Assembly (NCBI GenBank): GCA_950097015.1 | Contig: CATNEN010000005.1 | Coordinates: 3,844,001 to 3,908,000 of the forward strand | DNA from: Macrostomum hystrix | Taxonomy: Eukaryota; Animalia; Platyhelminthes | Length of the DNA stretch: 64,000 nucleotides | Reading direction: 5' to 3' | Part shown: positions 23,353 through 47,744 of the stretch, piece by piece | Numbering within the stretch: the stretch's first letter is position 1 | Layout of the letters: the number at the start of each line of letters is the position of its first letter | The notes under the pieces: model-generated | The model's input: only the letters and a program-made list of their open reading frames with translations | Database searches by the model: none | Told to the model about the DNA's origin: nothing | Made by a program: the position numbers and the translations under genes

Positions 23353-26300
23353 CTAGTTCTTCCTGATGAACCGTATGGTTCCGCTTTGCAGGTTTTTCTG
23401 CTGACCTAGTAGGAAGTCCAATTCATATGCCTCCGGACGGCCTGGGAATTGAACTGCCACCCTGCAGCTCCCTGCTCCCTGGATGTAGGCTTGGTACGCC
23501 TGTTGAATGCGCGGCTGGGCCAGGCTCTCAAACGGCTGCCAGATGCCACTCTCAGAACGGAACTCCCAGGTGTTCGTCACACTGTCTACGTGAACTTGTT
23601 GGCGCTGAATTGGGCGAATATAGCCAGTTTTAGAGTTCTTCTGTGTGTTTACAGCATAGCTGATGATGTACTGCTGTGGAATGTCATCAATGTAGCGTAT
23701 TATCGCAGGAGTAGTAATCTCAGAAGGTCCGCCCCTCGTCTTGTGCGCATCGTAGTGTGTTTCTAGAAGACGATTAATATCGTCATTGTAGGGCTCAAAG
23801 CTGCCATTGTCCTTCAACCAATGCCATCTGAATGGCGAAGTCCATTTGTCGTTGTCGCTTCTATCAGAGCTTACGCAGGAGGGTTTAATAAAGTCGATTC
23901 GCGGAGTTGTAGAATCAAAGTAGACAACCAAAACTGGGAGATTAAACGCCTTTGAGCCATCAGTTGGGTTGTTCACAACGTAGCAAAACCCGGGCTGATG
24001 ACTGATAGGGCCTCCTTGCAGCAAGAAGGCAACAATCATCGCGCCGCAGTTTCGTGTGTAGCCTCTTGAAATGCTTGGAGACACACCAAAGTATTCTCCT
24101 GGACCACAAGCTTGACCCGATCGTCTTTTCGGATCGAATCCATAGTGAGAGATTTGCTTGAGTGCCTCGGCAGAACTTCCATGGTAGGCGAAAAATCCAT
24201 CAGATTCGCTCAAAGCGCCACGACCCAGTGAAAGCAAACCGCAAACAAAAGCTTTGAACGCGGGGCACTGAGGGTCGCTAAGCAGTCCGGGATTCGGGTC
24301 GATCGCGCGGATTTGTGGCATATCTGCGGGCCAGTTCTTCCGGACGAATACTTCGGCTGCTTTGATCAGTTGCGAATTCCTTCCTACCATTGTGCTTGCT
24401 GACTTAAACTGCGCGCAGTCTCTGTCCTTATGAAGGATGTCGTCGACTGTTTTGCAATCGGCACAGACCCAGTGCTGACAGCTGGAGCATTGTTCGTATG
24501 CGTTTTTCTTTACAAAGCCGTCGCAGCCTCTCACGATACAGCAAGCGATATCCATTGACTTATCTTGAGCAACGTGCTGAGCAACAATCTGTTTGACGAG
24601 GGCTTCAAAGTCCAGTGCTAGCCTCTTTATTTCATTAATGGAGATCTCCGTCTGGCACTTCGGGCAGCAGATTGGGGTCGCCGTGGCACTTTGAAGCCAG
24701 CTTTTGACGCATCTGCAGAACGAGTGACCGCATACAAAGAAACTCTCTGTAGCTGTTTCAGAATTGCAGAGGACGCAAGTCTTTGTTCCGAATTTCTTTT
24801 TGCCACCAAGCTTGCTAATTAGATCAGTCAGTTCCTTGACACAAGGTGAAATAACTTGTGCATCGTTTCGAGCGTAAATTTCTATCTCTGAGCTATGGAA
24901 TAGAAACTTGATGAAACACTTGTCATCCCACTTCTTCTGCAGATCCTTCATCATCGAGTCTCCAGCAAGTCCTCTTCGAAACAACTGAGCTGTGGCAGCG
25001 TCCAGGGGAATGAGGCGATATCGACTCTCGATTTTAGCGAACTCGTCAGCAATGTTCCGCATGAGGGTGCCTTGGCTTACTTTTGGTCCGAAAACTCGGA
25101 AGCTCCGATCGTCTTTAAATTCACACGCGAGCTTCAGCTCGTTCATCCAGCGATCGAAGAGGCCAGAATTCTTGATTTCGAAAAACAGTGTCCTCTCTTT
25201 GCTAGAGAAGTAGCGAATCGTGGTCGGTAAGAACAGTCCTCGAAGCTTGTTAGCCACAAGATTAGTTTTGTCATGATCAGGACCAAACAGTCTGATCTCC
25301 AGCGTACCATCGGGTTTCTTGCTTTCAGCGTGTGTGACAGTGGCATCGCATGAGCGTACAATGAGGTCCTCAAGATCAGGAAACAGATTGCTGTGAGACA
25401 CATAAACTGAAGCGCACCATTCGGCTAAGAAGTTTGGAATCGATCCCTCGCGAGCCTTGTTGAAGAAGCTGATCGCACTTTTCGAGTCGCGAAACTTTAT
25501 GTCAAACTTCTCCTGCGTTACCTTTTCCTCATAGCACTTTACTTCTGGCGAAACGGTTTTAGTGAAGGGCCTTCCGTCACTCTTTCTTTGCAGCTGAATT
25601 TGAAACGGCTCAATTGACTGAACAACCTTCGACAAACTGGCCAGTGAGTCGCCTTGATCCGCACCGCCAACTCTAACAAGCGCACTGGATGACCCTATGC
25701 TGGCTTGCTTTGGTGGGTAAAAATGTATCATTGTACTCGCTTGTCCGAACTCAGCAAGGCTTATTAACTCTTTCACATTGGCCTCTGTCCAATGGGCAGG
25801 CAAGTTTAATATTTTAAAGCTTTTGCTTTCGCGACCGCGTCGGTTTTTGTTGACATGGCGAATTTTGTCGATTGATTCACTTATTGTGCGGATTTGCGAT
25901 TCATCAGTGCCAAAGGGTGCGGTCAAGAGAAGCTGCGTTAGGCCATTGCTAGTACCGATGCATTCTCCATCATCGCTTTCATGCTGATGTGGTCGCAAAG
26001 AGATATTTTCAGAACGTGTTGACTTAACGAAAATAAATTTTTCCACTCGAAGGCCACCAGAGAGTGTGACCTTGTAAATTTCCTTAATTGCAACTTCAGT
26101 CTCTTCTTTCAATAAGCGACGCCTCCTGTCGATTAATAAAGACTTTAAAACAGTTTGAAGCTTCTGCTTGTCCGTGCTTTTACCGAAGACGTGCAAGCTT
26201 GCTTCGTCGGCATTGTGCGACAGAACAATCCACTTTCTCTGTTCTTCTGTGAGTTGCGACTTGTTGCTAAAAATCTCATCTTTGAGAAGTCTGAAAAAAT

Positions 26301-29300
26301 TAGCGCTTACGTTTTGCTCAGTGAAGAGCGTTTGCAGTGGGTGCGATTGTCTATCAGAAATAGTCTTTGGATCTCTCACTGGGTGCAGACAGTCCACCAT
26401 GTACATCCCAGACACAGCTTGAATCACTCGCATAGCAATAAAGTACTGGCAGTCTTGCGCGCGCTGCGCAAAAACTGATGTGTTTGAAATTCGCGCTCGA
26501 ACGTCGGAGGTGAGGATTTTCACACCCTCTGAAGGTAGGTGCCGTACCAGCAGGCATGACACCTGCTCAGGCAGTACTTGCTCAAGGCAGCTGCTCACGA
26601 CGAAAACTGCGTCCTCGCAGTTACTCTCGACCTGGCACTCGGAGAACCACCTGCTGTTCTTAATAGTTTTCAGGATAGAGTTTCGTGACTTGTCAATGTG
26701 CTCTATGACCTTGTTGTTAAGTTTGTTTGCGTTGCTGTGTCCAACACGGCACGACCTACAGCTGTCCTGGAACTTTCTAGCTGCCTTGCCACAGTCAGCG
26801 CACCTGCCACCAACGAGTTTTCCGGAAGAGGCCCAGGAATCGAAAACGCTGACCTCGTACAGAATGTCGCTTTCGTAACCAAAAACCTCCAAGGCTCTCT
26901 TCTGCAGAGCCGCACTTTTCTCTTTGTCGCGTCCGAGGAAGAAGAGACTGCCAGGAGCTGTGAGAATGCAAGCAATCGTAGTCGCCAGACCCAGCTGATC
27001 GAAGCGCTGATGCGCTCTGGCTACGAAAGCGCTAAGACGAGGATCGAGTCCGAGCTCAGCGAATAGCTCGCCAACCTGAGACAGACGCCCTGAATTCTCT
27101 CTAGTCAGACAGTCAAGATCCACCAAAGTCTGGTACGAGTAGACAAGCATATCTTCGCTTGGTTTATCGAGAAATGGAAAGTCAAGTGGCCTTAGCTTCA
27201 GCTTGACGAGCTGCAAAATAACCAGATCAAGTGATGAACGCAGGATTTCAGGAATAAACTGCGCATTTCTCACTGTCTCCTCAGCGTACAACCGCACGCA
27301 GTGCCCAGGAGCAGTTCTGCCAGCGCGACCCTTTCTCTGATCCGCAGCGGATTGTGAAATCTGCTTCAGCTCAAGCACTGTGATGCGCCTCTTTGCGTCG
27401 AACCTGGACTCCTTGGCCAGTCCGGAGTCGACCACCAACCTCACTCCGTTGATGGTCAGCGATGTCTCAGCTACGTTGGTGCAAAACGCAATCAGGCGAT
27501 CTGAATCTTGACTGGGCTTGAAGTCGAGAACCTTCATCTGCTGATCTCTTGGCAGTGATCCATAGAGAGGCAGCGCGACCCAGTTGTCTTCCGTTCGCTG
27601 CTGCTCGAAGGCCTTGATTGCCTCCTGGATTTCCTTCTCACCTGGAAGAAACACGAGAGCGTAGCCTTCAGTGTGAGTCGTCAGCACTCTAACCAGATTT
27701 GGCACCAGATGGCTAATAATGAACTTGTCTGGGTTCCCTTCTGCAGTAGGAGGAATATATTCCAGTGAGACGATATGCATTCTACCTGGAATCTCAAGTA
27801 CATCGCAGTTGAAAAAGTCTCTGAATTGCTTTGGATCGATTGTGGCTGATGCGATGACTACGTAAAAGTTGTCAGGCCTCTTATTGCGAATGAGCTTGGC
27901 AAGGCCTAGGACAATGTCAACGTTGAGCGATCGTTCGTGGGCTTCATCAATGATTAGAACGGATACATTGTTCAAAGAATCGTTGTCCTGGCAATATCGA
28001 ATCAGACAGGCTTCCGTCATGAACATAATGTCTGTGCCCAGTGTACTATTGTCGCCACCCACCTTGAAGCCGACGGACTCGCCCACATCGCATCCGTCGA
28101 ACTCGTCGGCCACTCGCTGAGCGATGGAGATTGCAGCCATCACTCGCGGCTGTGTGCAGATAACGAGGCCTCCGAAGTACTCCGCCGCGTACTGTGGCAG
28201 CTGGGTGGTCTTGCCGCTGCCCGTCTCCGCTCTGACGATCAGAACTTTCTCCTTCTGGAGTCGTTGAAGGAATTCGTCCCGACAACTCAGCACTGGCAGT
28301 TGGTTGGCCTCTCTATCGATTCTTCTCTGGTGCTCCGATTTGAGCGATGAGCTTCTCAGTGGCTTGAAGGCGTGCTGAACCTTGCTCATCTCCGGATGAA
28401 GGCGGCTGCACTCCCTGTCTGAGCAGTCGCTTCCCTGAGGACAGGGCACGGGTCGTCTTGGAGAGTGAGTACAAGAGCAGCTAACATCGCGGCATCCAAG
28501 ACCGTCTGGACATGGATTCCAGGCCTCAGCGTGCAGTCCTTCGCAGTTTTGATTCCAGCATCGCTCTCGAAACTTGCAAGGCTTGACTCTTCCGGGCGGA
28601 TGCAGCTCAGAGCAATCGATCTGATCACACTTCTCACCCAACTTGCAAACAGCTCTATTTTTAGGATGAAGCCAAGGACAGAATGCAAGCTTGCATTTTG
28701 AACCCGACCGGCACTTCTTTAATCTTCCATGGTCGTGGAGCTTCTTGCAATCAAAGTCGGAGCAAGTCTTCTTGTTTTCGCAGACCTGTCTACTGATGGG
28801 GTGAAGCAGCTCACAATGGACATCCGAGCACTTGGCCTCCTGCCCACATAGCTTCTTCCGTGATGCGGAATGCAGCTTTGTGCAGTCGAATTCTTCGCAC
28901 ATGTCTCCGACATCACAGATGTTTCGGCTGACTGGGTGTAAGAAGCGGCATTCGACATTGAAGCACTTGTCTCCGAATCGGCAAGGCCTACTCCGACCAA
29001 TCGGGTGGCTCTTCTGGCACTGCAAGTCATCACAGTCCACCGAGCATTCGTTGGGATCTGAGAAGGCGCTTCCCCAGCCAAGTGGGTGTCCGAAATAGCA
29101 AGTAAAATCTTCACATTCTTCACCTTCGGAGCAACCGATGTGCTTGAATTGACACTGTGAATCGTATTTGCATATACCTGATCGATAGAAGATGCACAGA
29201 CGCATTTCTCCTTCCGCCTGCGCTTCTTTTTCTGTCTTCACGCCTGGCGAGTGTCCTAGACAACACTCATCGTCATCGCAATCTTTGTCCGAAGGGCAGG

Positions 29301-30381
29301 CAAAATGAATGCGACCGCAGGAATCACATAAAAAGCAATTTCCTGTGATATTTTGTCTGCATAATGTCCACTTAGTCTCAGGCACGGAGCTTATGGCATT
29401 AGCCCCAAGTCTCTCACTTTGTCTCAAAAGTGTGCTCTCGCCGGCGTCGCCGGTGAGTGTATTGATCGAGCATGGCTTTGCAGACCTCTTCAGCTTACAA
29501 TTAACAACAAACTCGGTGTCTTTAATTTTGTAGCCTTTCCATTGGGATATAAATCTTTGTGCATCACTTTCTGTTTGTCCGTTTAAGAAGGCGCACCAGG
29601 CAGCTCTGTTTCGCTGCTTGGATTCAGGCAGCACAATAAACCTTTCTGCCGGTTTTCCGAATGTCGCTTCTAGGAAGTCAACAGAAACTTTTGGCGGTAG
29701 CCCTGAAATTTCGACGGTACAGCTCAAGGTCTCGTTTAGCTGCTGGGCAATTTCAGCTTCTTGAGATTCCACAGTTTGTTTCCAAACCAGTTGACATTTT
29801 ATTTTGGTTTGTGTTCCCGGTATGAGTTGATTGTTCCACTTTTTCTGAAACTGACTGGCCTCATCCATAGTGAGATTATTCAGATAAGCACACCATGAAT
29901 TTTTATCGCGCTGTTTGTCCTCAGTAGGTACAAAAAATTCGCCAGTGTTTTGTCTTAGCAATGAGGCAAGGTCGTCTGCACGCGATTTCGGCGGCAGACC
30001 AAGTATTTGTACATTTGCTTTCTCCGGCTTTTGGAAAGGGGTCTTCGGATTCAAATTTTGATGTTTTGCAGAAGCGTCGCGACTTCTGTTTACCTGACAT
30101 TCTACTTTGTTGGATGTTCCGGGAAGTGTCATTTTGTTCCACTTTCTCTGAAATTCGTCCGCCTCCTCTTCAGTGAGTTCGTTGAGGAAGGCGCACCAGG
30201 CATTTTTATTCCGCTGTTTGGTCGCATCGAGAACCACAAACCTACCGGCTCGTTGGTTAAAGCTTGCGCGAAGCTTTTCAGGTGTCACACCAGGTGGCAG
30301 TCCTGTGATCTGAACGCTGCACAGCCTGACCTGCTGAGCACCGGACGCAGAGCGCATGAGTGGAGGCGGCAGTGACGCCAT
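23353..30381 (-). CDS. 2342-aa intronless multidomain protein (copy 1): 3x RRM-like, 14x CCCH ZnF, DEAH RNA helicase + HA2/OB-like, RRM/KH-like, RING-IBR, PARP-like ART, 2x WWE
   Basis: Uninterrupted 7029-nt ORF. Motifs: V.I.GLPP repeats; C-x5-C-x4-C-x3-H array; AETGSGKT, TQPR, DEAHER, SAT, TNVAETSLT, QRKGRAGR; CVLC..CGHSFC..CPKC; YHGS..GEYFG..SRGY; WHWLKDNGSFEPY and WEFRSESGIWQPF. Confidence 0.93.
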   Translation of the reverse strand: MASLPPPLMRSASGAQQVRLCSVQITGLPPGVTPEKLRASFNQRAGRFVVLDATKQRNKNAWCAFLNELTEEEADEFQRKWNKMTLPGTSNKVECQVNRSRDASAKHQNLNPKTPFQKPEKANVQILGLPPKSRADDLASLLRQNTGEFFVPTEDKQRDKNSWCAYLNNLTMDEASQFQKKWNNQLIPGTQTKIKCQLVWKQTVESQEAEIAQQLNETLSCTVEISGLPPKVSVDFLEATFGKPAERFIVLPESKQRNRAAWCAFLNGQTESDAQRFISQWKGYKIKDTEFVVNCKLKRSAKPCSINTLTGDAGESTLLRQSERLGANAISSVPETKWTLCRQNITGNCFLCDSCGRIHFACPSDKDCDDDECCLGHSPGVKTEKEAQAEGEMRLCIFYRSGICKYDSQCQFKHIGCSEGEECEDFTCYFGHPLGWGSAFSDPNECSVDCDDLQCQKSHPIGRSRPCRFGDKCFNVECRFLHPVSRNICDVGDMCEEFDCTKLHSASRKKLCGQEAKCSDVHCELLHPISRQVCENKKTCSDFDCKKLHDHGRLKKCRSGSKCKLAFCPWLHPKNRAVCKLGEKCDQIDCSELHPPGRVKPCKFRERCWNQNCEGLHAEAWNPCPDGLGCRDVSCSCTHSPRRPVPCPQGSDCSDRECSRLHPEMSKVQHAFKPLRSSSLKSEHQRRIDREANQLPVLSCRDEFLQRLQKEKVLIVRAETGSGKTTQLPQYAAEYFGGLVICTQPRVMAAISIAQRVADEFDGCDVGESVGFKVGGDNSTLGTDIMFMTEACLIRYCQDNDSLNNVSVLIIDEAHERSLNVDIVLGLAKLIRNKRPDNFYVVIASATIDPKQFRDFFNCDVLEIPGRMHIVSLEYIPPTAEGNPDKFIISHLVPNLVRVLTTHTEGYALVFLPGEKEIQEAIKAFEQQRTEDNWVALPLYGSLPRDQQMKVLDFKPSQDSDRLIAFCTNVAETSLTINGVRLVVDSGLAKESRFDAKRRITVLELKQISQSAADQRKGRAGRTAPGHCVRLYAEETVRNAQFIPEILRSSLDLVILQLVKLKLRPLDFPFLDKPSEDMLVYSYQTLVDLDCLTRENSGRLSQVGELFAELGLDPRLSAFVARAHQRFDQLGLATTIACILTAPGSLFFLGRDKEKSAALQKRALEVFGYESDILYEVSVFDSWASSGKLVGGRCADCGKAARKFQDSCRSCRVGHSNANKLNNKVIEHIDKSRNSILKTIKNSRWFSECQVESNCEDAVFVVSSCLEQVLPEQVSCLLVRHLPSEGVKILTSDVRARISNTSVFAQRAQDCQYFIAMRVIQAVSGMYMVDCLHPVRDPKTISDRQSHPLQTLFTEQNVSANFFRLLKDEIFSNKSQLTEEQRKWIVLSHNADEASLHVFGKSTDKQKLQTVLKSLLIDRRRRLLKEETEVAIKEIYKVTLSGGLRVEKFIFVKSTRSENISLRPHQHESDDGECIGTSNGLTQLLLTAPFGTDESQIRTISESIDKIRHVNKNRRGRESKSFKILNLPAHWTEANVKELISLAEFGQASTMIHFYPPKQASIGSSSALVRVGGADQGDSLASLSKVVQSIEPFQIQLQRKSDGRPFTKTVSPEVKCYEEKVTQEKFDIKFRDSKSAISFFNKAREGSIPNFLAEWCASVYVSHSNLFPDLEDLIVRSCDATVTHAESKKPDGTLEIRLFGPDHDKTNLVANKLRGLFLPTTIRYFSSKERTLFFEIKNSGLFDRWMNELKLACEFKDDRSFRVFGPKVSQGTLMRNIADEFAKIESRYRLIPLDAATAQLFRRGLAGDSMMKDLQKKWDDKCFIKFLFHSSEIEIYARNDAQVISPCVKELTDLISKLGGKKKFGTKTCVLCNSETATESFFVCGHSFCRCVKSWLQSATATPICCPKCQTEISINEIKRLALDFEALVKQIVAQHVAQDKSMDIACCIVRGCDGFVKKNAYEQCSSCQHWVCADCKTVDDILHKDRDCAQFKSASTMVGRNSQLIKAAEVFVRKNWPADMPQIRAIDPNPGLLSDPQCPAFKAFVCGLLSLGRGALSESDGFFAYHGSSAEALKQISHYGFDPKRRSGQACGPGEYFGVSPSISRGYTRNCGAMIVAFLLQGGPISHQPGFCYVVNNPTDGSKAFNLPVLVVYFDSTTPRIDFIKPSCVSSDRSDNDKWTSPFRWHWLKDNGSFEPYNDDINRLLETHYDAHKTRGGPSEITTPAIIRYIDDIPQQYIISYAVNTQKNSKTGYIRPIQRQQVHVDSVTNTWEFRSESGIWQPFESLAQPRIQQAYQAYIQGAGSCRVAVQFPGRPEAYELDFLLGQQKNLQSGTIRFIRKN

Positions 30382-31350
30382 CTGCGAAAAGTTGCAGTTT
30401 TAGAAAAATGTTGATATTTTCAATGCTATTATTAAAATCCCTGCCTTTTAGCAAACACATTTGCCTATACTCGTACTAATCGTTAATTGTTACTACAAGT
30501 AGTACGCTCGTATTCCAAGATTTTATAAGCGCGAAGGGAAGGGCTAATTTACGCAAGTAGCTTAGTACAAATGAACCCAATATTTGCTAAAGCTCTAGAT
30601 GCGTAACACAAGATAGAAATTGTACTTCCAAGTACTAAACAAGTGTTGTTTAGTTGTCCTTAGTGAAAGACACCAAAACTATTCCTTGGTCTTGCAGATT
30701 CAAGCTGTCGAGATCTCGGGCAGAGTTATACAAAGCTAAAGTCAAATTTTAGGTGCTGCACAAAACTCTAGCCATCGATAATCTCGAGAAAGGGGTGTGG
30801 ATGACTGCTTCTCAAGACAGCACGATCAATTAAATATCCTAAATATGACTCACCGATCTTTCATCAGCCGTGAGACAAAAAATTTTCACTTGCTACGAGC
30901 ATATGTTAGATAAAAAATAAACGGCTTTTTGAGATTAATACTGCTATAGAGGTGTCTTTAGAAACCAGACGATATATTCGCTATGACTGTAGAGCAGAAT
31001 ATTATTTGTAGCTTAATGACTCTTTCTGATCTAATAAGACTGACTGGATGTGCGTATGAACTTGAACAATAGCACAGCTAGACGAGGCAGAGTAGTTTGG
31101 GCAACAAAATTACAGACGAGAAAGTTCTCTTTTCCTGGAAATCTAATGCTAACTTTCGCATTGAAATTCGTAGCAAGGCCACAATCATTTGACCACTAGG
31201 CTGCTTACATTCTGGGGCATTCAGAGAGTACATAGTCTATCTGGAAATCAATGGACATGGCTTTTGTACACAAATGTTAGAGTGTGTGCCTGCGTACTCA
31301 AAAGTCAGAATATTAGGAATGGGAAGTAAAATGCAGATTTCCCTCTCCTT

Positions 31351-31526
31351 CAGGGGCGTAGCCAGGATTTTTTTGGGGATATCGGTTTTGGTTCTATCCA
31401 GCGTATCCAGAATAAAAAACAGTTCTATTTTTTACGAGTAATTCATTTCTTTCGAAGAAACTGAATGCGAAAACATTTGAGACATCAAATCGGCCGATAC
31501 ACAGATACCCCCTCGCTACGCCACTG
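31351..31526. mobile_element. hAT-type MITE
   Basis: TIRs CAGGGGCGTAGC / GCTACGCCACTG, with a perfect 8-bp TSD CTCTCCTT (31343-31350 and 31527-31534). Confidence 0.85.
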
Positions 31527-31598
31527 CTCTCCTTGCTGGCTGCGGGTCGACTGTCCACAATCATGCATTAGAGCCTACAGCTTTTGATATTACTAAAC

Positions 31599-31869
31599 CA
31601 GGGGTCGGCAAACTCCGGCCCGCGGGCCAGATGCGGCCTTCGAAGCTCTTAAATCCGGCCCGTTGCCCCCTTCCAACACCAATAGTATCCTGTCTCATCT
31701 CTTCTGTCTCATCTCTCTATGAGAAATTGCGCACTGTTTTATCTCTCTTCTGTCTCTTCTCTCCCTGTGCTCATCTCTCCCCTGTCTCATATTTCTACAG
31801 TCAATGCGGCCCGCTGTCGCTTTTAGGTTCTCTCTTTGGCCAACTAGCTAATAACTTTGCCAACCCCTG
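31599..31869. mobile_element. hAT-type MITE (MER45/Tip100-like ends)
   Basis: TIRs CAGGGGTCGGCAAA / TTTGCCAACCCCTG, subterminal GGCCCGCGGGCC, and a perfect 8-bp TSD TACTAAAC (31591-31598 and 31870-31877). Confidence 0.88.
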
Positions 31870-31949
31870 TACTAAACTAATAAAAAGACTTAATTCGTTT
31901 GTAGACATATTATGTTTGTACTTCTGTGCAAGTATATGCCGTGAACTAA

Positions 31950-37050: not shown

Positions 37051-39475
37051 GAGAGAAAGACGTCAATGCCAAGGACGTGATGAAGCAATGAGCAGACGCT
37101 TGCAAGACGGCGACCACGATGACATGAAATCCGGGTCAGCGACTCGGTGTTGCGACGGCGAATCAGCGCCAGTAAAACGCAGACGCCATTCGAGAGCGGG
37201 GCGTGGAATGTCGATCGGGTGGTCGGAAACTCGTTGTTGCTGCTTTGCGATGGTGCCACCTGCTGGCGCCACTGCACGGCGGTCAAAGTCGTCAGCCCCG
37301 ATCCGCCCAGCTCTACTGTTGATGGCGCACCGCCAGATCTTCCGCCCAGGGCCGGGCGGCAGGCCCCCGCGGCTCTGTGCCCCCACCACGAGCTGCAGCA
37401 GTATAAGGATTGAGCACTCAGTGCAGGGACTGTTCGTGAATTCATGCTGACGAATTGTTTTGTGTGTGTGTGTCAGTATTTTATTTGAGTTTCTCAATAG
37501 TGCTAGAGTTGCAAATATTTTTCTTTCGTTTTAAATACGTTTCGTAGCGTTTTTTTTCGAAGTCTTTTACTATTTTCTCCCGTCGTGAGCGTGTATTCCA
37601 TTACTATTAGCTCTTACCTACTTACATAGCCTGAATGTACGCTAGGCTATGTACACCTGGCTCCAGGTGCTAATGACCGAGCTTAGGTGGGTTTCTCTCC
37701 CGGCACAAAATATATAGACTTATGCTCAATCAATGTAGAAGGTAGAAGTCAAGCTAGGTACTCGCTACCAAATTTCGGCCTTGGTCTCAGTTATTACACA
37801 CCCCATGTCTGGGCCCTGGCGACTTTATTCCTGCGCTCCAGGTCTGCGCAAAGTTCCCGCGACCTCCCTCGACCTCAATCATCTCTCTAGATTCCCGTGG
37901 GTCGGCGAACTGGGTGTCTCCAGGGCGGATAACGCTACCCTCCCAGTCGGACTCTCTGACCTGAGCCATGAGCCCGTAGGGACACAAGACAGTCCTAAAA
38001 CGCGGCTTATAGAGATCGTTTCAGGACATTTAAATACGAGAATAGCTAAAAATTGGTCTTGCTTATAAGATACGAATCTCGTATGAGATTCAAATTGACG
38101 CCAGATCGTTTGACATTGATAAGACAGCAACACCAAAATGACCCAGAGCTTATCGTTTCTTTTGGACTTAGAGACCAAGTGAAGTTTGAGCTTACATTGA
38201 CGCCGCATGGTACGGCATAGCGAAACATTGGGTGCGCAGCTGTACTTTAGACTTCTGTGCTTAATAAAGAACTTTTTACTGAGTCCAAACCTATTCAATC
38301 CAACTGCCACTAAAAAAGCTAAAAATAACTAGTAGTGGTCCTTGATTCAAACTTTCTAGCTTGGTGATAAGATTAACATTTTGCCAGCTTTGCGAATGTG
38401 AGTCTGCGCCTCCGCCCAGCACCAAGCTCATGCTCATACGCACGAATAACCCGTCACTTAATAGAAAAAAAACTATTTAAGCCACATTTATTCTGTACTA
38501 AAAGTGTAGCGAAAATATTTTTTACAGGCGCTGAAGCAGTTTGTAATTTTAAAAGCAGTTGATTATTCTGTCTAGCAGGTGAGACTTCCCAGTCTCACGA
38601 AGATCGGTGAGTAATGTTGATGATATTCGACACACTTTTGTATACGTTCGTTTACCAATAACAGACTGCTGTCTTATATATAGGTCTGTCCTTAATCCCT
38701 TATAATTGTAAACCTTCAGGATTAGTCCGTCCGTTTTGCACTAACGATTGAATGTCTTAAATTGACTAATTGTCCAATTGTATAAGTTTTTTTAAAACTT
38801 AAATTAGTTCATCTTCAATTCTAGAGATCGATAAATAAGTGAAGCGAGTGAAATCTTACCTTATTTGGAGTTAAAAATGTAATTAGTTTTATGAGTTTAA
38901 ATAGCTTTTCAATCGTGAGTTAGCAGTTATAATTTATAACATGATTCCAGGGACTACGATTTATTCAGAAAAATTTATGATTCCGATTTTTTTAAGTTTC
39001 CTCTGGTCTTAATTTTGCTCAAAGAAAGTCAAAATTTTCACCATAAAATTTACCATAAAACCATAAAATATGCTTAGAATATCACTCTTACTTTCTTAAG
39101 TCCATTTTTCTCGAGAATCTTTAAGAGAATTTCTGGAGTACATTTTAAAGCAATTTTGCAAGAAAATTCTTACTGGCATGTGTAGTGTCTGCTTATTTCC
39201 GCTTCGCTCGCTACCCCAATCTCTAAACGCTATATATTTTCAGATTTCCCCTGCTGCTATTGAACCGATTGGTAGAACACCGACCCCGGTGAATAGTGAA
39301 TAGTCGCTAGCTTTAAATTCCTCACGCTCCAGCTAGGACATTCATTTTATTACACATGTTAGCTTGCAATTCAGCAATAAGAGATGTACACGACATAAAG
39401 GAACAAGCTAAACAACATATATCTCTCGTCAATGAGTAAAGTTAATAGGTTAATTGGTAATAATGTAAATTAAAT

Positions 39476-39830
39476 TTAAATTACTCTAGTTTTTTCACCG
39501 CACCATGATGGCATCAAGTTGTGAACAATTCTTATGGTCTGCTGGAATCTCAAGAGGTCTCGCAATAGAACCGGAGAGTGATAATTGAACCCAAGTAAAT
39601 TCCGCGAAATTAAAATCTTTATTTTGATCTCTCCACGTGTGTCCAGGTCAAACAAATAAACGTCTTCATTGCAAATTGAAATTATGAGTTGTAAGATAGA
39701 ACCTACTTTCAGACTCGCAAGGTCGTTCGAGCATGGCAAGCTATTTAGCCTCTTAAACTGCTACAATACATCTGCCTGGCGTTTCGATAAGTCGATATGA
39801 TGTTGCACTCCCTTGGCATTTAAGCACCTG
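39476..39830 (-). pseudogene. Possible relic exon of a 3'-5' exonuclease (EXD1/Egalitarian/WRN-exo-like)
   Basis: LQLIISICNEDVYLFDL...LLRDLLRFQQTIRIVHN resembles the LQ.AT...VYLFD...L..ILE...I.KV.HD pattern; the upstream frame has stops. Confidence 0.35.
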
Positions 39831-40021
39831 CTGAAAGAAAGAAACATTTGAGACCATAGGGAAACTTAGAAAATCGGATTTAAAAACTTTTCTGCACAAT
39901 CGCCCGTTTTCCGCCCCGAGTATGGATTAGATCCTGCACGATTCATTGTTTCAGATTGAACTGCACATGCTTGCATATTACTTTACTTTCTTTTAGTATT
40001 TTGAGGAACAACACTCTACAA

Positions 40022-40235
40022 GCACACATGCACACATATAAGGTGAGCAGGTACACACTCACACAGGTGTGAACATCTGCCCAGACTTTCTCATCGTCAG
40101 GCAGTGTGCATTCTCACTGCGCCTTGGGGATTGGCCTGATCGTGTGCATAAACAGCACAACAAGCCCCTTAGACTTCTCTCCTGGTCGCAGATTCGAGCT
40201 CAGGGACATTGGTGTGGGAGTCACGCACAAAGCAG
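40022..40235 (-). mobile_element. SINE family A copy (diverged)
   Basis: CACACAGGTGTG..CAGACTTTCTCATCGTCAGGCAGTG..TCGAGCTCAGGGAC match the other copies. Confidence 0.7.
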
Positions 40236-40685
40236 ATTCCTTCTCGCTTTTGTGGCTACTCAGTGAACAAAGCTTGAAGGTATTGCTGGTCATGTTTCAA
40301 AACGGAAAATGTATAATTTACTTTTTTGTATTGCAGTATGGATCATTGGACATGCGTGCCGAGCCTTTCTCTGTTGCCCTTATGATTTTATTTATCGTTT
40401 AGATGCTTCGTTTCGTTCTGAACAAACAAAATCGTTCAGCATCGTCCTTCAAATAGAATTAACAAAAACAAGCGTTGGGGTAAAATTACTTTAGAAATTA
40501 TTCCGAATTGCAAACTTCTGGAAAGGCTACATTATACCACAAGCATCACCTTCACATAATCTTTGTCATGCTACTCGCAGAAGAAATGAACGTTTAGTTA
40601 GCAACAATTTATTGCAAAAGTAGTATTGTAGAGTGCTGAGTAAATAGTTTATGCAAAAAGCTATTTCAATCAAAATTCTTCGCAG

Positions 40686-43600
40686 ATGGCGTCACTGCCG
40701 CCTCCACTCATGCGCTCTGCGTCCGGGGCTCAGCAGGTCAGGCTGTGCAGCGTTCAGATCACAGGACTGGCACCTGGTGTGACACCTGAAAAGCTTCGCG
40801 CAAGCTTTAACCAACGAGCCGGTAGGTTTGTGGTTCTCGATGCGACCAAACAGCGGAATAAAAATGCCTGGTGCGCCTTCCTCAACGAACTCACTGAAGA
40901 GGAGGCGGATGAATTTCAGAGAAAGTGGAACAAAATGACACTTCCCGGAACATCCAACAAAGTAGAATGTCAGGTAAACAGAAGTCGCGACGCTTCTGCA
41001 AAAAATCAAAATTTGAATCCGAAGACCCCTTTCCAAAAGCCGGAGAAAGCAAATGTACAAATACTTGGTCTGCCGCCTAATTCAAGAGCAGAAGACCTGG
41101 CCTCGAGATTAGGACAAAAAGCTGGCCAATTCACGGTGCTTCCTGAGGACAAACAGCGCGATAAAACTTCCTGGTGTGCCTATCTGAACGGTCTCACAAT
41201 TGATGAGGCCAGAGAGTTTCAAACGAGGTGGAACAACCAGCTGATACCAGGAACAGAAACTAAACTAAAATGTCAGGTGCTTTCGAACAGAGAAACAGAG
41301 GAACCCAAAGTAGCTAAAACTTCTCAGCAGCCAAACTGCAGTGTCAAAATTTCAGGACTACCACCAAATGTTTCAATTAGCTTCCTGAAAACAATATTCC
41401 GACAGCGGGCCGATCAGTTTGTTGTGCCTCCTGAATCCAAACAGCGAAACAAGAACGATTGGTGCGCTTTTATAAATGGACTTTTAGACAGTGAAGCGCA
41501 AAGTTTTGCATCTCAATGGGATCTCTACAAAATAAAAGACACCCAGTTTGTCCTGCATTGTAAGGTGAAGAGGCCAGTGAAAGCAACACCCATCAATCTG
41601 AGCAATAAACCTGGCCCTAGCTCAGTCAGTAGCACACTTTTGAAGCAAAGCGAGAGACTCGGGGCAAGTGTTACAAGCTCCATGTCTTCTGTGTGCACAA
41701 CACAAAGCGATTTGCCTAAGAGAAGGGGCACGCTGTGCAGACACAATATCACGGGCACCTGCAAATTCGGTGATGACTGCCAGAACATTCATTTTGCCTG
41801 CCCTTCGGACAAAGATTGCGATGACGATGAGTGTTGTCTAGGACACTCGCCAGGCGTGAAGACAGAAAAAGAAGCGCAGGTGGAAGGAGAAATGCGTCTG
41901 TGCATCTTCTATCGATCAGGTATATGCAAATACGATTCACAGTGTCAATTCAAGCACATCGGTTGCTCCGAAGGTGAAGAATGTGAAGATTTTACTTGCT
42001 ATTTCGGACACCCACTTGGCTGGGGAAGCGCCTTCTCAGATCCCAACGAATGCTCGGTGGACTGTGATGACTTGCAGTGCCAGAAGAGCCACCCGATTGG
42101 TCGGAGTAGGCCTTGCCGATTCGGAGACAAGTGCTTCAATGTCGAATGCCGCTTCTTACACCCAGTCAGCCGAAACATCTGTGATGTCGGAGACATGTGC
42201 GAAGAATTCGACTGCACAAAGCTGCATTCCGCATCACGGAAGAAGCTATGTGGGCAGGAGGCCAAGTGCTCGGATGTCCATTGTGAGCTGCTTCACCCCA
42301 TCAGTAGACAGGTCTGCGAAAACAAGAAGACTTGCTCCGACTTTGATTGCAAGAAGCTCCACGACCATGGAAGATTAAAGAAGTGCCGGTCGGGTTCAAA
42401 ATGCAAGCTTGCATTCTGTCCTTGGCTTCATCCTAAAAATAGAGCTGTTTGCAAGTTGGGTGAGAAGTGTGATCAGATCGATTGCTCTGAGCTGCATCCG
42501 CCCGGAAGAGTCAAGCCTTGCAAGTTTCGAGAGCGATGCTGGAATCAAAACTGCGAAGGACTGCACCCTGAGGCCTGGAATCCATGTCCAGACGGTCTTG
42601 GATGCCGCGATGTTAGCTGCTCTTGTACTCACTCTCCAAGACGACCCGTGCCCTGTCCTCAGGGAAGCGACTGCTCAGACAGGGAGTGCAGCCGCCTTCA
42701 TCCGGAGATGAGCAAGGTTCAGCACGCCTTCAAGCCACTGAGAAGCTCATCGCTCAAATCGGAGCACCAGAGAAGAATCGATAGAGAGGCCAACCAACTG
42801 CCAGTGCTGAGTTGTCGGGACGAATTCCTTCAACGACTCCAGAAGGAGAAAGTTCTGATCGTCAGAGCGGAGACGGGCAGCGGCAAGACCACCCAGCTGC
42901 CACAGTACGCGGCGGAGTACTTCGGAGGCCTCGTTATCTGCACACAGCCGCGAGTGATGGCTGCAATCTCCATCGCTCAGCGAGTGGCCGACGAGTTCGA
43001 CGGATGCGATGTGGGCGAGTCCGTCGGCTTCAAGGTGGGTGGCGACAACAGTACACTGGGCACAGACATTATGTTCATGACGGAAGCCTGTCTGATTCGA
43101 TATTGCCAGGACAACGATTCTTTGAACAATGTATCCGTTCTAATCATTGATGAAGCCCACGAACGATCGCTCAACGTTGACATTGTCCTAGGCCTTGCCA
43201 AGCTCATTCGCAATAAGAGGCCTGACAACTTTTACGTAGTCATCGCATCAGCCACAATCGATCCAAGGCAATTCAGAGACTTTTTCAACTGCGATGTACT
43301 TGAGATTCCAGGTAGAATGCATATCGTCTCACTGGAATATATTCCTCCTACTGCAGAAGGGAACCCAGACAAGTTCATTATTAGCCATCTGGTGCCAAAT
43401 CTGGTTAGAGTGCTGACGACTCACACTGAAGGCTACGCTCTCGTGTTTCTTCCAGGTGAGAAGGAAATCCAGGAGGCAATCAAGGCCTTCGAGCAGCAGC
43501 GAACGGAAGACAACTGGGTCGCGCTGCCTCTCTATGGATCACTGCCAAGAGATCAGCAGATGAAGGTTCTCGACTTCAAGCCCAGTCAAGATTCAGATCG

Positions 43601-46600
43601 CCTGATTGCGTTTTGCACCAACGTAGCTGAGACATCGCTTACCATCAACGGAGTGAGGTTGGTGGTCGACTCCGGACTGGCCAAGGAGTCCAGGTTCGAC
43701 GCAAAGAGGCGCATCACAGTGCTTGAGCTGAAGCAGATTTCACAATCCGCTGCGGATCAGAGAAAGGGTCGCGCTGGTAGAACTGCTCCTGGGCACTGCG
43801 TGCGGTTGTACGCTGAGGAGACAGTGAGAAATGCGCAGTTTATTCCTGAAATCCTGCGTTCATCACTTGATCTGGTTATTTTGCAGCTCGTCAAGCTGAA
43901 GCTAAGGCCACTTGACTTTCCATTTCTCGATAAACCAAGCGAAGATATGCTTGTCTACTCGTACCAGACTTTGGTGGATCTTGACTGTCTGACTAGAGAG
44001 AATTCAGGGCGTCTGTCTCAGGTTGGCGAGCTATTCGCTGAGCTCGGACTCGATCCTCGTCTTAGCGCTTTCGTAGCCAGAGCGCATCAGCGCTTCGATC
44101 AGCTGGGTCTGGCGACTACGATTGCTTGCATTCTCACAGCTCCTGGCAGTCTCTTCTTCCTCGGACGCGACAAAGAGAAAAGTGCGGCTCTGCAGAAGAG
44201 AGCCTTGGAGGTTTTTGGTTACGAAAGCGACATTCTGTACGAGGTCAGCGTTTTCGATTCCTGGGCCTCTTCCGGAAAACTCGTTGGTGGCAGGTGCGCT
44301 GACTGTGGCAAGGCAGCTAGAAAGTTCCAGGACAGCTGTAGGTCGTGCCGTGTTGGACACAGCAACGCAAACAAACTTAACAACAAGGTCATAGAGCACA
44401 TTGACAAGTCACGAAACTCTATCCTGAAAACTATTAAGAAGAGCAGGTGGTTCTCCGAGTGCCAGGTCGAGAGTAACTGCGAGGACGCGGTTTTCGTCGT
44501 GAGCAGCTGCCTTGAGCAAGTACTGCCTGAGCAGGTGTCATGCCTGCTGGTACGGCACCTACCTTCAGAGGGTGTGAAAATCCTCACCTCCGACGTTCGA
44601 GCGCGAATTTCAAACACATCAGTTTTCGCGCAGCGCGCGCAAGACTGCCAGTACTTTATTGCTATGCGAGTGATTCAAGCTGTGTCTGGGATGTACATGG
44701 TGGACTGTCTGCACCCAGTGAGAGATCCAAAGACTATTTCTGATAGACAATCGCACCCACTGCAAACGCTCTTCACTGAGCAAAACGTAAGCGCTAATTT
44801 TTTCAGACTTCTCAAAGATGAGATTTTTAGCAACAAGTCGCAACTCACAGAAGAACAGAGAAAGTGGATTGTTCTGTCGCACAATGCCGACGAAGCAAGC
44901 TTGCACGTCTTCGGTAAAAGCACGGACAAGCAGAAGCTTCAAACTGTTTTAAAGTCTTTATTAATCGACAGGAGGCGTCGCTTATTGAAAGAAGAGACTG
45001 AAGTTGCAATTAAGGAAATTTACAAGGTCACACTCTCTGGTGGCCTTCGAGTGGAAAAATTTATTTTCGTTAAGTCAACACGTTCTGAAAATATCTCTTT
45101 GCGACCACATCAGCATGAAAGCGATGATGGAGAATGCATCGGTACTAGCAATGGCCTAACGCAGCTTCTCTTGACCGCACCCTTTGGCACTGATGAATCG
45201 CAAATCCGCTCAATAAGTGAATCAATCGACAAAATTCGCCATGTCAACAAAAACCGACGCGGTCGCGAAAGCAAAAGCTTTAAAATATTAAACTTGCCTG
45301 CCCATTGGACAGAGGCCAATGTGAAAGAGTTAATAAGCCTTGCTGAGTTCGGACAAGCGAGTACAATGATACATTTTTACCCACCAAAGCAAGCCAGCAT
45401 AGGGTCATCCAGTGCGCTTGTTAGAGTTGGCGGTGCGGATCAAGGCGACTCACTGGCCAGTTTGTCGAAGGTTGTTCAGTCAATTGAGCCGTTTCAAATT
45501 CAGCTGCAAAGAAAGAGTGACGGAAGGCCCTTCACTAAAACCGTTTCGCCAGAAGTAAAGTGCTATGAGGAAAAGGTAACGCAGGAGAAGTTTGACATAA
45601 AGTTTCGCGACTCGAAAAGTGCGATCAGCTTCTTCAACAAGGCTCGCGAGGGATCGATTCCAAACTTCTTAGCCGAATGGTGCGCTTCAGTTTATGTGTC
45701 TCACAGCAATCTGTTTCCTGATCTTGAGGACCTCATTGTACGCTCATTCGATGCCACTGTCACACACGCTGAAAGCAAGAAACCCGATGGTACGCTGGAG
45801 ATCAGACTGTTCGGTCCTGATCATGACAAAACTAATCTTGTGGCTAACAAGCTTCGAGGACTGTTCTTACCGACCACGATTCGCTACTTCTCTAGCAAAG
45901 AGAGGACGCTGTTTTTCGAAATCAAGAATTCTGGCCTCTTCGATCGCTGGATGAACGAGCTGAAGCTCGCGTGTGAATTTAAAGACGATCGGAGCTTCCG
46001 AGTTTTCGGACCAAAAGTAAGCCAAGGCACCCTCATGCGGAACATTGCTGACGAGTTCGCTAAAATCGAGAGTCGATATCGCCTCATTCCCCTGGACGCT
46101 GCCACAGCTCAGTTGTTTCGAAGAGGACTTGCTGGAGACTCGATGTTGAAGGATCTGCAGAAGAAGTGGGATGACAAGTGTTTCATCAAGTTTCTGTTCC
46201 ATAGCTCAGAGATAGAAATTTACGCTCGAAACGATGCACAAGTTATTTCACCTTGTGTCAAGGAACTGACTGATCTAATTAGCAAGCTTGGTGGCAAAAA
46301 GAAATTCGGAACAAAGACTTGCGTCCTCTGCAATTCTGAAACAGCTACAGAGAGTTTCTTTGTATGCGGTCACTCGTTCTGCAGATGCGTCAAAAGCTGG
46401 CTTCAAAGTGCCACGGCGACCCCAATCTGCTGCCCGAAGTGCCAGACGGAGATCTCCATTAATGAAATAAAGAGGCTAGCACTGGACTTTGAAGCCCTCG
46501 TCAAACAGATTGTTGCTCAGCACGTTGCTCAAGATAAGTCAATGGATATCGCTTGCTGTATCGTGAGAGGCTGCGACGGCTTTGTAAAGAAAAACGCATA

Positions 46601-47744
46601 CGAACAATGCTCCAGCTGTCAGCACTGGGTCTGTGCCGATTGCAAAACAGTCGACGACATCCTTCATAAGGACAGAGACTGCGCGCAGTTTAAGTCAGCA
46701 AGCACAATGGTAGGAAGGAATTCGCAACTGATCAAAGCAGCCGAAGTATTCGTCCGGCAGAACTGGCCCGCAGATATGCCACAAATCTGCGCGATCGATC
46801 CGAATCCCGGACTGCTTAGCGACCCTCAGTGCCCCGCGTTCAAAGCTTTTGTTTGCGGTTTGCTTTCACTGGGTCGTGGCGCTTTGAGCGAATCTGATGG
46901 ATTTTTCGCCTACCATGGAAGTTCTGCCGAGGCACTCAAGCAAATCTCTCACTATGGATTCGATCCGAAAAGACGATCGGGCCAAGCTTGTGGTCCAGGA
47001 GAATACTTTGGTGTGTCTCCAAGCATTTCAAGAGGCTACACACGAAACTGCGGCGCGATGATTGTTGCCTTCTTGCTGCAAGGAGGCCCTATCAGTCATC
47101 AGCCCGGGTTTTGCTACGTTGTGAACAACCCAACTGATGGCTCAAAGGCGTTTAATCTCCCAGTTTTGGTTGTCTACTTTGATTCTACAACTCCGCGAAT
47201 CGACTTTATTAAACCCTCCTGCGTAAGCTCTGATAGAAGCGACAACGACAAATGGACTTCGCCATTCAGATGGCATTGGTTGAAGGACAATGGCAGCTTT
47301 GAGCCCTACAATGACGATATTAATCGTCTTCTAGAAACACACTACGATGCGCACAAGACGAGGGGCGGACCTTCTGAGATTACTACTCCTGCGATAATAC
47401 GCTACGTTGATGACATTCCACAGCAGTACATCATCAGCTATGCTGTAAACACACAGAAGAACTCTAAAACTGGCTATATTCGCCCAATTCAGCGCCAACA
47501 AGTTCACGTAGCCAGTGTGACGAACACCTGGGAGTTCCGTTCTGAGAGTGGCATCTGGCAGCCGTTTGAGAGCCTGGCCCAGCCGCGCATTCAACAGGCG
47601 TACCAAGCCTACATCCAGGGAGCAGGGAGCTGCAGGGTGGCAGTTCAATTCCCAGGCCGTCCGGAGACATATGAATTGGACTTCCTACTAGGTCAGCAGA
47701 AAAACCTGCAAAGCGGAACCATACGGTTCATCAGGAAGAACTAG
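40686..47744 (+). CDS. 2352-aa intronless multidomain protein (copy 2, inverted paralogue of 23353-30381)
   Basis: Uninterrupted 7059-nt ORF with the same domain order and motifs (GSGKT ~42876, DEAH ~43149, RING ~46319, ART HG ~46914, WWE from ~47265); AATAAA ~100 bp after the stop. Confidence 0.93.
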   Translation: MASLPPPLMRSASGAQQVRLCSVQITGLAPGVTPEKLRASFNQRAGRFVVLDATKQRNKNAWCAFLNELTEEEADEFQRKWNKMTLPGTSNKVECQVNRSRDASAKNQNLNPKTPFQKPEKANVQILGLPPNSRAEDLASRLGQKAGQFTVLPEDKQRDKTSWCAYLNGLTIDEAREFQTRWNNQLIPGTETKLKCQVLSNRETEEPKVAKTSQQPNCSVKISGLPPNVSISFLKTIFRQRADQFVVPPESKQRNKNDWCAFINGLLDSEAQSFASQWDLYKIKDTQFVLHCKVKRPVKATPINLSNKPGPSSVSSTLLKQSERLGASVTSSMSSVCTTQSDLPKRRGTLCRHNITGTCKFGDDCQNIHFACPSDKDCDDDECCLGHSPGVKTEKEAQVEGEMRLCIFYRSGICKYDSQCQFKHIGCSEGEECEDFTCYFGHPLGWGSAFSDPNECSVDCDDLQCQKSHPIGRSRPCRFGDKCFNVECRFLHPVSRNICDVGDMCEEFDCTKLHSASRKKLCGQEAKCSDVHCELLHPISRQVCENKKTCSDFDCKKLHDHGRLKKCRSGSKCKLAFCPWLHPKNRAVCKLGEKCDQIDCSELHPPGRVKPCKFRERCWNQNCEGLHPEAWNPCPDGLGCRDVSCSCTHSPRRPVPCPQGSDCSDRECSRLHPEMSKVQHAFKPLRSSSLKSEHQRRIDREANQLPVLSCRDEFLQRLQKEKVLIVRAETGSGKTTQLPQYAAEYFGGLVICTQPRVMAAISIAQRVADEFDGCDVGESVGFKVGGDNSTLGTDIMFMTEACLIRYCQDNDSLNNVSVLIIDEAHERSLNVDIVLGLAKLIRNKRPDNFYVVIASATIDPRQFRDFFNCDVLEIPGRMHIVSLEYIPPTAEGNPDKFIISHLVPNLVRVLTTHTEGYALVFLPGEKEIQEAIKAFEQQRTEDNWVALPLYGSLPRDQQMKVLDFKPSQDSDRLIAFCTNVAETSLTINGVRLVVDSGLAKESRFDAKRRITVLELKQISQSAADQRKGRAGRTAPGHCVRLYAEETVRNAQFIPEILRSSLDLVILQLVKLKLRPLDFPFLDKPSEDMLVYSYQTLVDLDCLTRENSGRLSQVGELFAELGLDPRLSAFVARAHQRFDQLGLATTIACILTAPGSLFFLGRDKEKSAALQKRALEVFGYESDILYEVSVFDSWASSGKLVGGRCADCGKAARKFQDSCRSCRVGHSNANKLNNKVIEHIDKSRNSILKTIKKSRWFSECQVESNCEDAVFVVSSCLEQVLPEQVSCLLVRHLPSEGVKILTSDVRARISNTSVFAQRAQDCQYFIAMRVIQAVSGMYMVDCLHPVRDPKTISDRQSHPLQTLFTEQNVSANFFRLLKDEIFSNKSQLTEEQRKWIVLSHNADEASLHVFGKSTDKQKLQTVLKSLLIDRRRRLLKEETEVAIKEIYKVTLSGGLRVEKFIFVKSTRSENISLRPHQHESDDGECIGTSNGLTQLLLTAPFGTDESQIRSISESIDKIRHVNKNRRGRESKSFKILNLPAHWTEANVKELISLAEFGQASTMIHFYPPKQASIGSSSALVRVGGADQGDSLASLSKVVQSIEPFQIQLQRKSDGRPFTKTVSPEVKCYEEKVTQEKFDIKFRDSKSAISFFNKAREGSIPNFLAEWCASVYVSHSNLFPDLEDLIVRSFDATVTHAESKKPDGTLEIRLFGPDHDKTNLVANKLRGLFLPTTIRYFSSKERTLFFEIKNSGLFDRWMNELKLACEFKDDRSFRVFGPKVSQGTLMRNIADEFAKIESRYRLIPLDAATAQLFRRGLAGDSMLKDLQKKWDDKCFIKFLFHSSEIEIYARNDAQVISPCVKELTDLISKLGGKKKFGTKTCVLCNSETATESFFVCGHSFCRCVKSWLQSATATPICCPKCQTEISINEIKRLALDFEALVKQIVAQHVAQDKSMDIACCIVRGCDGFVKKNAYEQCSSCQHWVCADCKTVDDILHKDRDCAQFKSASTMVGRNSQLIKAAEVFVRQNWPADMPQICAIDPNPGLLSDPQCPAFKAFVCGLLSLGRGALSESDGFFAYHGSSAEALKQISHYGFDPKRRSGQACGPGEYFGVSPSISRGYTRNCGAMIVAFLLQGGPISHQPGFCYVVNNPTDGSKAFNLPVLVVYFDSTTPRIDFIKPSCVSSDRSDNDKWTSPFRWHWLKDNGSFEPYNDDINRLLETHYDAHKTRGGPSEITTPAIIRYVDDIPQQYIISYAVNTQKNSKTGYIRPIQRQQVHVASVTNTWEFRSESGIWQPFESLAQPRIQQAYQAYIQGAGSCRVAVQFPGRPETYELDFLLGQQKNLQSGTIRFIRKN

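Follow-up and report, generated by a model that had tools for sequence, protein, structure and literature searches.

Two neighbouring genes that are nearly identical across a 7-kb coding exon, and that share very little beyond it, raise the question of whether they are recent copies or old duplicates that have been kept alike. Such a pair, here termed A and B, lies in a stretch of 64,000 nucleotides from the genome of the flatworm Macrostomum hystrix (C5:3844001-3908000 in a 220-Mb assembly of 42 contigs; hereafter the window). We favor, with a probability of roughly 85%, the view that A and B arose by an old inverted duplication at the DNA level and that their coding sequence has been homogenized by interlocus gene conversion. 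The preliminary description of this locus had proposed an old duplication with conversion between the arms, and this proposal is now backed by a large contrast in synonymous divergence within the exon, by old homology upstream of it, and by a genome that holds no third donor.

Two divergent genes with nearly identical coding exons

In the ORF list of the window, each gene is a single open reading frame (ORF) that is both intact and intronless. A occupies positions 23353-30381 on the minus strand and encodes 2342 amino acids, and B occupies 40686-47744 on the plus strand and encodes 2352. The two products share the same architecture, with three RRM-like units, multiple CCCH fingers, a DEAH-type helicase, weak RING/IBR/PARP-like matches, and two WWE domains, and they are 95% identical overall. 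The genes stand head to head (divergently). A repeat finder reported inverted arms at 23340-29384 and 41713-47757 (6045 nt, 99%) and a second pair of arms at 29780-30393 and 40674-41287 (614 nt, 91%). Taken with the ORF coordinates, these matches bear out the earlier account of divergent ~7-kb arms that are 10,304 bp apart, measured from ATG to ATG. A and B were the only full-length copies of the gene in the 220-Mb genome, with no third copy, and neither exact product had a record in public assemblies.

A diverged block interrupts the near-identity within the exon

BLASTN comparison of the arms together with 3-kb flanks detected homology from 7 nt 5′ of the ATG to ~10 nt past the stop codon; identity reached 99.6% in the final 5,969 nt of the arms. 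To describe the remainder we used a codon alignment and calculated synonymous (dS) and non-synonymous (dN) divergence and their ratio (omega). The preliminary description had suggested following identity and dS along the arms, and this comparison resolved three zones. The first 130 codons form a short 5′ tract (B 40686-41077, plus strand, nt 1-392 of the coding sequence [CDS]; A 29990-30381, minus strand), which covers RRM-like unit 1 and carries 4 nt differences (dS 0.025, omega 0.29). Codons 131-372 form a block (B 41078-41785, plus strand, CDS nt 393-1100; A 29312-29989, minus strand, 10 codons shorter) with RRM-like units 2-3, a linker, and the first CCCH finger, in which dS reached 0.665 and dN 0.240 (omega 0.36). 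This block, the putative conversion-resistant part of the exon, contained 91 non-synonymous and 43 synonymous codon differences along with 20 gapped codons, and A and B are 38% divergent there at the amino acid level. From codon 373 to the end, a long tract (B 41786-47744, plus strand, CDS nt 1101-7059; A 23353-29311, minus strand) showed only 24 nt differences in 5,959, with a dS of 0.0077, a dN of 0.0026, and an omega of 0.34. Thus, dS is ~85-fold higher in the internal block than in the long tract. The borders of the block are sharp (B CDS nt 319/393 on the 5′ side and 1100/1196 on the 3′ side). Outside it, we counted exactly 14 amino acid differences, 2 before and 12 after, in agreement with the ~14 that had been estimated by eye.

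A GENECONV-type test, which had also been proposed, gave a result well outside chance expectation. When Macrostomum lignano served as third sequence in a Sawyer-type permutation, A and B agreed at up to 250 consecutive polymorphic sites, as compared to a maximum of 85 in 10,000 permutations. The differences in the long tract were evenly spread, with a largest gap of 229 codons, and this spacing is compatible with a single age. The difference in density between the 5′ tract (4/392) and the 3′ tract (24/5,959) was not significant (Fisher p=0.09).

Because omega is alike in the block, the long tract, and the 5′ tract (0.36, 0.34, and 0.29), selection alone cannot explain the contrast in dS. The contrast therefore reflects age rather than constraint or positive selection. 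Positive selection within the block was considered separately and rejected, as omega ranged from 0.28 to 0.41 in sub-windows. We likewise rejected asymmetric evolution of the block, since a relative-rate test assigned 19 unique changes to A and 20 to B (p=0.87). The GC content at third codon positions was 0.54 in the near-identical parts as compared to 0.43-0.46 in the block. A shift of this kind might reflect GC-biased conversion, but the regions of the M. lignano gene follow a comparable trend (0.546 versus 0.51). A six-frame search of the whole genome with the B block yielded no third donor, its matches being confined to A, to B, and to RRM-like unit 1 of these two genes.

The block is younger than the split from Macrostomum lignano

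An exhaustive protein search with the N-terminal 420 amino acids returned only the M. lignano orthologue cluster below 1e-30, and a word-index search with the same query returned no match. The strong relative is Mlig016460.g2, and Mlig016460.g1 belongs to the same cluster (PAA62682.1, PAA84961.1). An intronless HSP70 of the genome shares 95% identity with its M. lignano counterpart and no more than 84% with that of any other taxon, which marks the host as a Macrostomum-type flatworm distinct from M. lignano; mitochondrial COX1 was absent from the assembly.

The M. lignano genes resemble A and B in belonging to the same family, in their intronless CDS (65% identical over 1,206 amino acids), and in being locally duplicated. 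In contrast to A and B, they form a direct tandem with 96.9% nucleotide identity and homology that continues for more than 2.4 kb past the stop codon. The M. lignano duplication is thus independent of the A/B pair and is an ordinary young segmental duplication. Its members lie at L020:7-1806 and 10001-16785 and at L021:10001-16780 (L020 and L021 being the M. lignano loci). The public models (1263 and 1673 amino acids) are shortened at frame changes near L020:13666 and near L021:15019, 15483, and 15881, which could be assembly errors or real breaks. The pieces between the frame changes were handled separately. The orthologue has two N-terminal RRM-like units, as compared to three in A and B; the additional unit 1 (B 40686-41045, A 30022-30381) is almost the same in the two copies.

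In the block, amino acid identity was 62% between A and B and 43% from either of them to M. lignano. The corresponding values were 99.6% and 72% for the CCCH and helicase region, and 99.0% and 67% for the C terminus. No part of the protein is less conserved than the block, which shows 57% amino acid divergence from M. lignano, as compared to 28% for the CCCH and helicase region, and carries several indels. Block dN was 0.237 between A and B versus 0.51-0.58 to M. lignano, whereas in the CCCH and helicase region it was 0.0026 versus 0.18. The A-B value in the latter region is therefore ~30-fold below the expectation for a sequence of the age of the block. Synonymous sites were saturated against M. 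lignano (dS at least 1.9). Because the A and B blocks are closer to each other than to M. lignano and carry 19 and 20 unique changes, the two versions of the block coalesce after the M. lignano lineage had split off, and evolution has accelerated in neither of them.

We also looked for synteny with M. lignano that might point to the parental copy. The flanking genes had no match, and the only hit was a shared element resembling a short interspersed nuclear element (SINE). This SINE-like element has a tRNA-related end (GGAATCGAACC...) and is found in the window at 12206-12418, with a related piece at 53757-53863, and in M. lignano at L021:9788-9983 and L020:7938-8133. It is ~85% identical between the two genomes and has no Rfam match. 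A M. lignano copy lies directly upstream of the helicase orthologue and ends 17 nt before its ATG.

Near-identity ends at the coding edges, with older homology upstream

Both genes carry TTCGCAG directly before the ATG. After the TAG, A continues with CTATTTCGTTGGA and B with CTGCTTCGTTTGA, and similarity is gone within ~13 nt. These edges agree with the earlier claim that flank similarity collapses at TTCGCAG and ~13 nt after the stop codon; the flanks are, however, not wholly unrelated, as a diverged island of homology remains upstream. A lenient self-comparison revealed an inverted match within the spacer, 38428-38627 against 31065-30833, with 64% identity over 238 columns. The island lies ~0.45 kb upstream of the coding sequence in A and ~2.06 kb upstream in B. 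Local alignment of the 3-kb upstream regions scored 38, whereas shuffled sequences gave 15.4 ± 1.4 (z=16). No residual homology was present in the 3′ flanks, for which the local alignment was at background (z=0.4). Each island is single-copy in the genome and therefore does not represent a dispersed repeat.

Both islands end in AAGATCG, with the canonical splice donor GTGAGT immediately after, and a pyrimidine run and CAG stand in front of each coding exon. On the basis of this shared donor and acceptor context, we infer that each gene consists of a non-coding exon 1, an intron in the 5′ untranslated region (UTR) that ends in CAG directly before the ATG, and one coding exon. The putative exon 1 of B, together with promoter-proximal DNA, would correspond to 38428-38606 (plus strand) and that of A to 30854-31065 (minus strand). 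The predicted 5′-UTR intron of B spans 38607-40685 (plus strand; 2,079 nt, GTGAGT...TTCGCAG) and that of A 30382-30853 (minus strand; 472 nt, GTGAGT...TTTTCGCAG). The two introns cannot be aligned with each other, and the islands hold only short upstream ORFs. A dispersed ~250-bp repeat, the copies of which are 73-88% alike, is present at 40021-40223, within the predicted intron of B, as well as at 6423-6679, 19311-19679, 50975-51296, and 54758-54989 of the window.

On base-by-base inspection, the A and B edges contained neither a poly(A) remnant or A-run nor a target-site duplication. Apart from the 64% island, the flanks were unalignable, and the exon itself holds the block with a dS of 0.67; the pair thus lacks the uniform identity of coding and flanking sequence that marks a recent segmental inverted duplication. 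The spacer contains a decayed multi-copy element at 34883-37426, which is 69-82% identical to many genome copies and has a weak reverse transcriptase/RNase H trace at 36648-36941, and further repeat fragments at 31593-31887 and 32055-32506. Such decayed multi-copy fragments are as expected of old intergenic DNA.

A model of recurrent conversion limited by constraint

We propose that the original inverted genomic duplication included at least the promoter-proximal exon 1, the 5′-UTR intron, and the single 7-kb coding exon. Repeated conversion between the nearby inverted copies would then have taken place wherever purifying selection keeps them similar enough to pair, and would hold the constrained coding sequence at a low equilibrium of ~0.4% nucleotide divergence. 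Weakly constrained sequence, by comparison, would drift past the similarity threshold for heteroduplex formation, especially after indels and transposon insertions, and from then on diverge freely. This may be how the intron, the 3′ UTR with its flank, the transposon-fragmented spacer, and the fastest-evolving coding block all escaped from exchange. Because escape would depend on constraint, the edges of identity would come to lie at the splice acceptor, the stop codon, and the borders of the block. The inverted orientation may in addition guard the pair against deletion by unequal exchange. Both ORFs are intact and evolve with an omega of ~0.35. That conversion at A and B has been a continuous regime, and that the block escaped by neutral divergence, are what this pattern suggests to us.

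Several points weigh against this reading. It is built on assembled sequence, from which exon 1, the intron, and the splice sites of A and B are predictions. Against M. lignano, which is too distant an outgroup for this comparison, A and B group together in every segment and do not display the classic incongruence of grouping by species in one part and by paralogue type in another. The near-identity persists up to the last bases beside non-homologous DNA, which is sharper than simple tract-termination models would have it and is accommodated only qualitatively. Last, as a single tract of gene conversion in an animal, 6 kb is long, and whether it represents one long event or many is likewise explained only in qualitative terms.

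Alternative origins of the near-identity

The alternative that fares best accepts an old duplication but takes the homogenizing template to be a transcript or its cDNA instead of the paralogous DNA. It fits the edges of identity, one of which falls at the start of the coding exon, a splice or trans-splice acceptor, and the other where the CDS ends. It also fits the position of the sole intron at the extreme 5′ end, as predicted by 3′-biased cDNA-mediated events. A cDNA would, however, carry the 3′ UTR, and the 3′ UTRs of A and B were not homogenized.

Two further gene pairs in the same genome also speak against a cDNA template. The HSC70-like pair at C3:3916001-3933000 is convergent; its exon 1 is 80% identical and intron 1 is unalignable, and ~99% identity extends from 5 nt before exon 2 through the following intron and exon 3, ending exactly at the TAA. 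The pair therefore repeats the edge pattern of the helicase genes. The intron inside its tract has a GTAAGC donor, in-frame stops, and short tandem repeats of differing copy number, and its inclusion shows that the template there was genomic DNA. The HSP70 pair at C33:3866393-3874760 is divergent, intronless, and 99.86% identical over 2,783 nt, and the identity takes in ~360 nt upstream and ~500 nt downstream of the ORF, again more than a coding sequence. Two further intact HSP70 copies are located on the same contig. A PF05731 search for a TROVE-vWA pair as an additional comparator found none. As DNA conversion confined by homology gives identical edges with fewer assumptions, we consider a cDNA template unlikely.

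A second alternative is a recent duplication of the ORF only, through a partial DNA copy or a processed cDNA copy, with later replacement or rapid divergence of the block. An ORF-restricted recent duplication can mimic conversion and must be excluded (PMC3966223). High identity that gives out no more than 7 nt from the ATG and ~13 nt from the TAG would be its natural outcome, and an intronless CDS in an intron-bearing genome is what a processed copy would leave. The M. lignano orthologue is also intronless, however, and the lack of introns therefore predates the pair. A block with a dS of 0.67 lies within sequence with a dS of 0.008-0.025, yet the genome holds no third sequence that could have replaced it, and its two versions are equidistant from M. 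lignano, with similar numbers of unique changes. Moreover, both genes retain the diverged upstream island with an identical splice donor, hence a common predicted intron position, and neither has a poly(A) tract or a target-site duplication. A processed retrocopy would lack the intron and bring along the 3′ UTR and poly(A), but the predicted intron position is common to both genes and the 3′ UTRs are unrelated. The preliminary description had offered a CDS-only retro- or cDNA-mediated copy as its other option; the predicted intron position, the island, edges free of poly(A) and target-site duplications, and the old block inside young sequence all contradict it. The old internal block and the upstream island therefore exclude an ORF-restricted recent duplication for practical purposes, and we rate it as very improbable.

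An assembly artefact, whether a false inverted duplication, a haplotype join, or paralogues homogenized by polishing, would suit the 0.4% divergence, which is within the range of heterozygosity, but it is scarcely credible given the unique flanks on both sides of each arm, the differing intron lengths, the 38% amino acid divergence and 10-codon length difference of the block, the need for chimeric joins exactly at the splice acceptor and the stop codon in both arms, and the ~20% divergence expected without conversion, at which reads could not cross-map.

Relation to known systems

Interlocus gene conversion, our preferred explanation, is a well-known process, and the A/B pair is a clean instance of it. 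The closest parallels are col-12/col-13 and the inverted hsp16 modules of Caenorhabditis elegans, adjacent paralogues in which the ORFs are 99.5-100% identical and the flanks lack similarity (PMC3966223). The identity of col-12/col-13 includes an intron, and both systems, which cover direct and inverted cases, were read as old duplicates homogenized by conversion (PMC3966223). They share with A and B the combination of near-identical ORFs and unrelated flanks. The A/B pair differs in its much longer tract (6 kb in a 7-kb exon), in its internal clock (dS 0.67 versus 0.008), and in the diverged upstream exon, which shows that the duplication reached beyond the ORF. A search of the literature found nothing specific on gene conversion in Macrostomum.

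Inverted pairs of the Drosophila Hsp70Aa/Ab type are divergent, intronless, near-identical, and a few kilobases apart, and are kept alike by conversion. The HSP70 pair on C33 differs from A and B in that its identity extends into the flanks, whereas that of A and B stops at the CDS edges and is separated by a 10.3-kb spacer. The ampliconic palindromes of the human Y and X chromosomes have inverted arms that are more than 99.9% identical throughout, including non-coding DNA, around a unique spacer, and are subject to intrachromosomal conversion. A and B resemble them in their inverted arms, their spacer, and identity apparently maintained by conversion. In contrast to the palindromes, only constrained coding DNA appears to have been homogenized, while the introns, the UTRs, and one coding block escaped. 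The term palindrome, which had been applied to this locus at the outset, is therefore loose, as near-identity is confined to the CDS and the 10.3-kb spacer holds transposon debris.

Attacin A and B of Drosophila exemplify mosaic conversion of an immune type, with a homogenized body and a deeply diverged segment. The diverged segment of the helicase genes differs from it in bearing no sign of positive selection (omega 0.36, symmetric rates), so that an adaptive variable head is not demonstrated. A bolder version of our interpretation would have the block kept different by selection. A and B might then act as two RNA sensors that differ in their heads (RRM-like units 2-3 plus the first CCCH finger) but have one homogenized effector body in common (helicase, RING/IBR, PARP-like, and WWE), and mosaic conversion might be unusually pervasive in this genome. 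We regard this version as doubtful; were it true, M. hystrix would lend itself naturally to the study of how immune-type gene families are shaped by conversion.

The locus is informative in several respects. One exon in which 6-kb and 0.39-kb homogenized tracts surround an old 0.7-kb block allows both the age of the duplication and that of the last homogenization to be read, and the diverged upstream exon betrays an older and larger duplication. Furthermore, ORF-limited identity need not imply a cDNA copy, as edges settle where constraint ends. Paralogue dS badly underestimates age in such cases, which calls for caution in annotating Macrostomum genomes and in dating their duplicates. The block also provides a diagnostic sequence to tell A and B transcripts apart in expression or RNA interference work. 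The value of the pair would rise if the block proved to be a selected specificity module, or if conversion proved unusually pervasive in the genome.

Protein product and family

Unit 1 of the three RRM-like units matched Pfam RRM_1, and units 2 and 3 are ~50% identical to it. They are followed by a run of CCCH fingers, the DEAH-type helicase core, an unassigned middle part, the weak RING/IBR/PARP-like region, and the two C-terminal WWE domains. The product may be a DEAH/RHA-type RNA helicase with a PARP-WWE tail: DEAD (43.5 bits), Helicase_C (44 bits), and WWE (65 bits) scored above the Pfam cut-offs, whereas RING (18.3 bits), IBR (18.2 bits), PARP (17.3 bits), and HA2 (12 bits) scored below them. 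PF00644 and PF01485 are present in many homologues. A search of solved structures with the C-terminal part gave a single weak match, to the WWE domain of TRIP12. The closest full-length relatives outside the flatworms are found in bdelloid rotifers (36-45% identity), with others in oomycetes, Pelomyxa, Carpediemonas, and Hydra, many of which have PARP and WWE domains. The giant helicase-PARP-WWE architecture thus has a patchy taxonomic distribution.

The head-to-head layout had been likened to that of paired immune receptor genes, a comparison that the proteins do not sustain. NLR-type pairs consist of two different NB-ARC/LRR receptors on a short bidirectional promoter and differ from A and B in domains, promoter layout, and partner identity. 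The Pfam matches of A and B (RRM, CCCH, DEAD/Helicase_C, and WWE) include neither NB-ARC nor LRR. The putative first exons do not share a compact promoter, as a distance of 7.3 kb that includes transposon debris separates them, and the partners are nearly identical rather than a sensor and its helper.

Other features of the window

Three long tandem arrays are present in the window at 1407-3115, 3600-5599, and 6900-7528, and off-diagonal spacing suggests periods of ~19-20, 21, and 24 nt. They give rise to repetitive ORFs on both strands (569-593 amino acids) with only spurious Pfam hits. An Rfam scan of the window and of L020 detected only a tRNA. The neighbours of the gene pair comprise a tRNA-Asp(GTC) at 16854-16927, a tetraspanin-like ORF at 18710-19456 that does not reach the Pfam cut-off, a GGACT/AIG2-like ORF at 49995-50690 that contains an internal repeat, and a WD40-repeat exon at 55052-55672. 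These neighbours are absent from the M. lignano locus, where the downstream neighbour is a B9-C2 gene.

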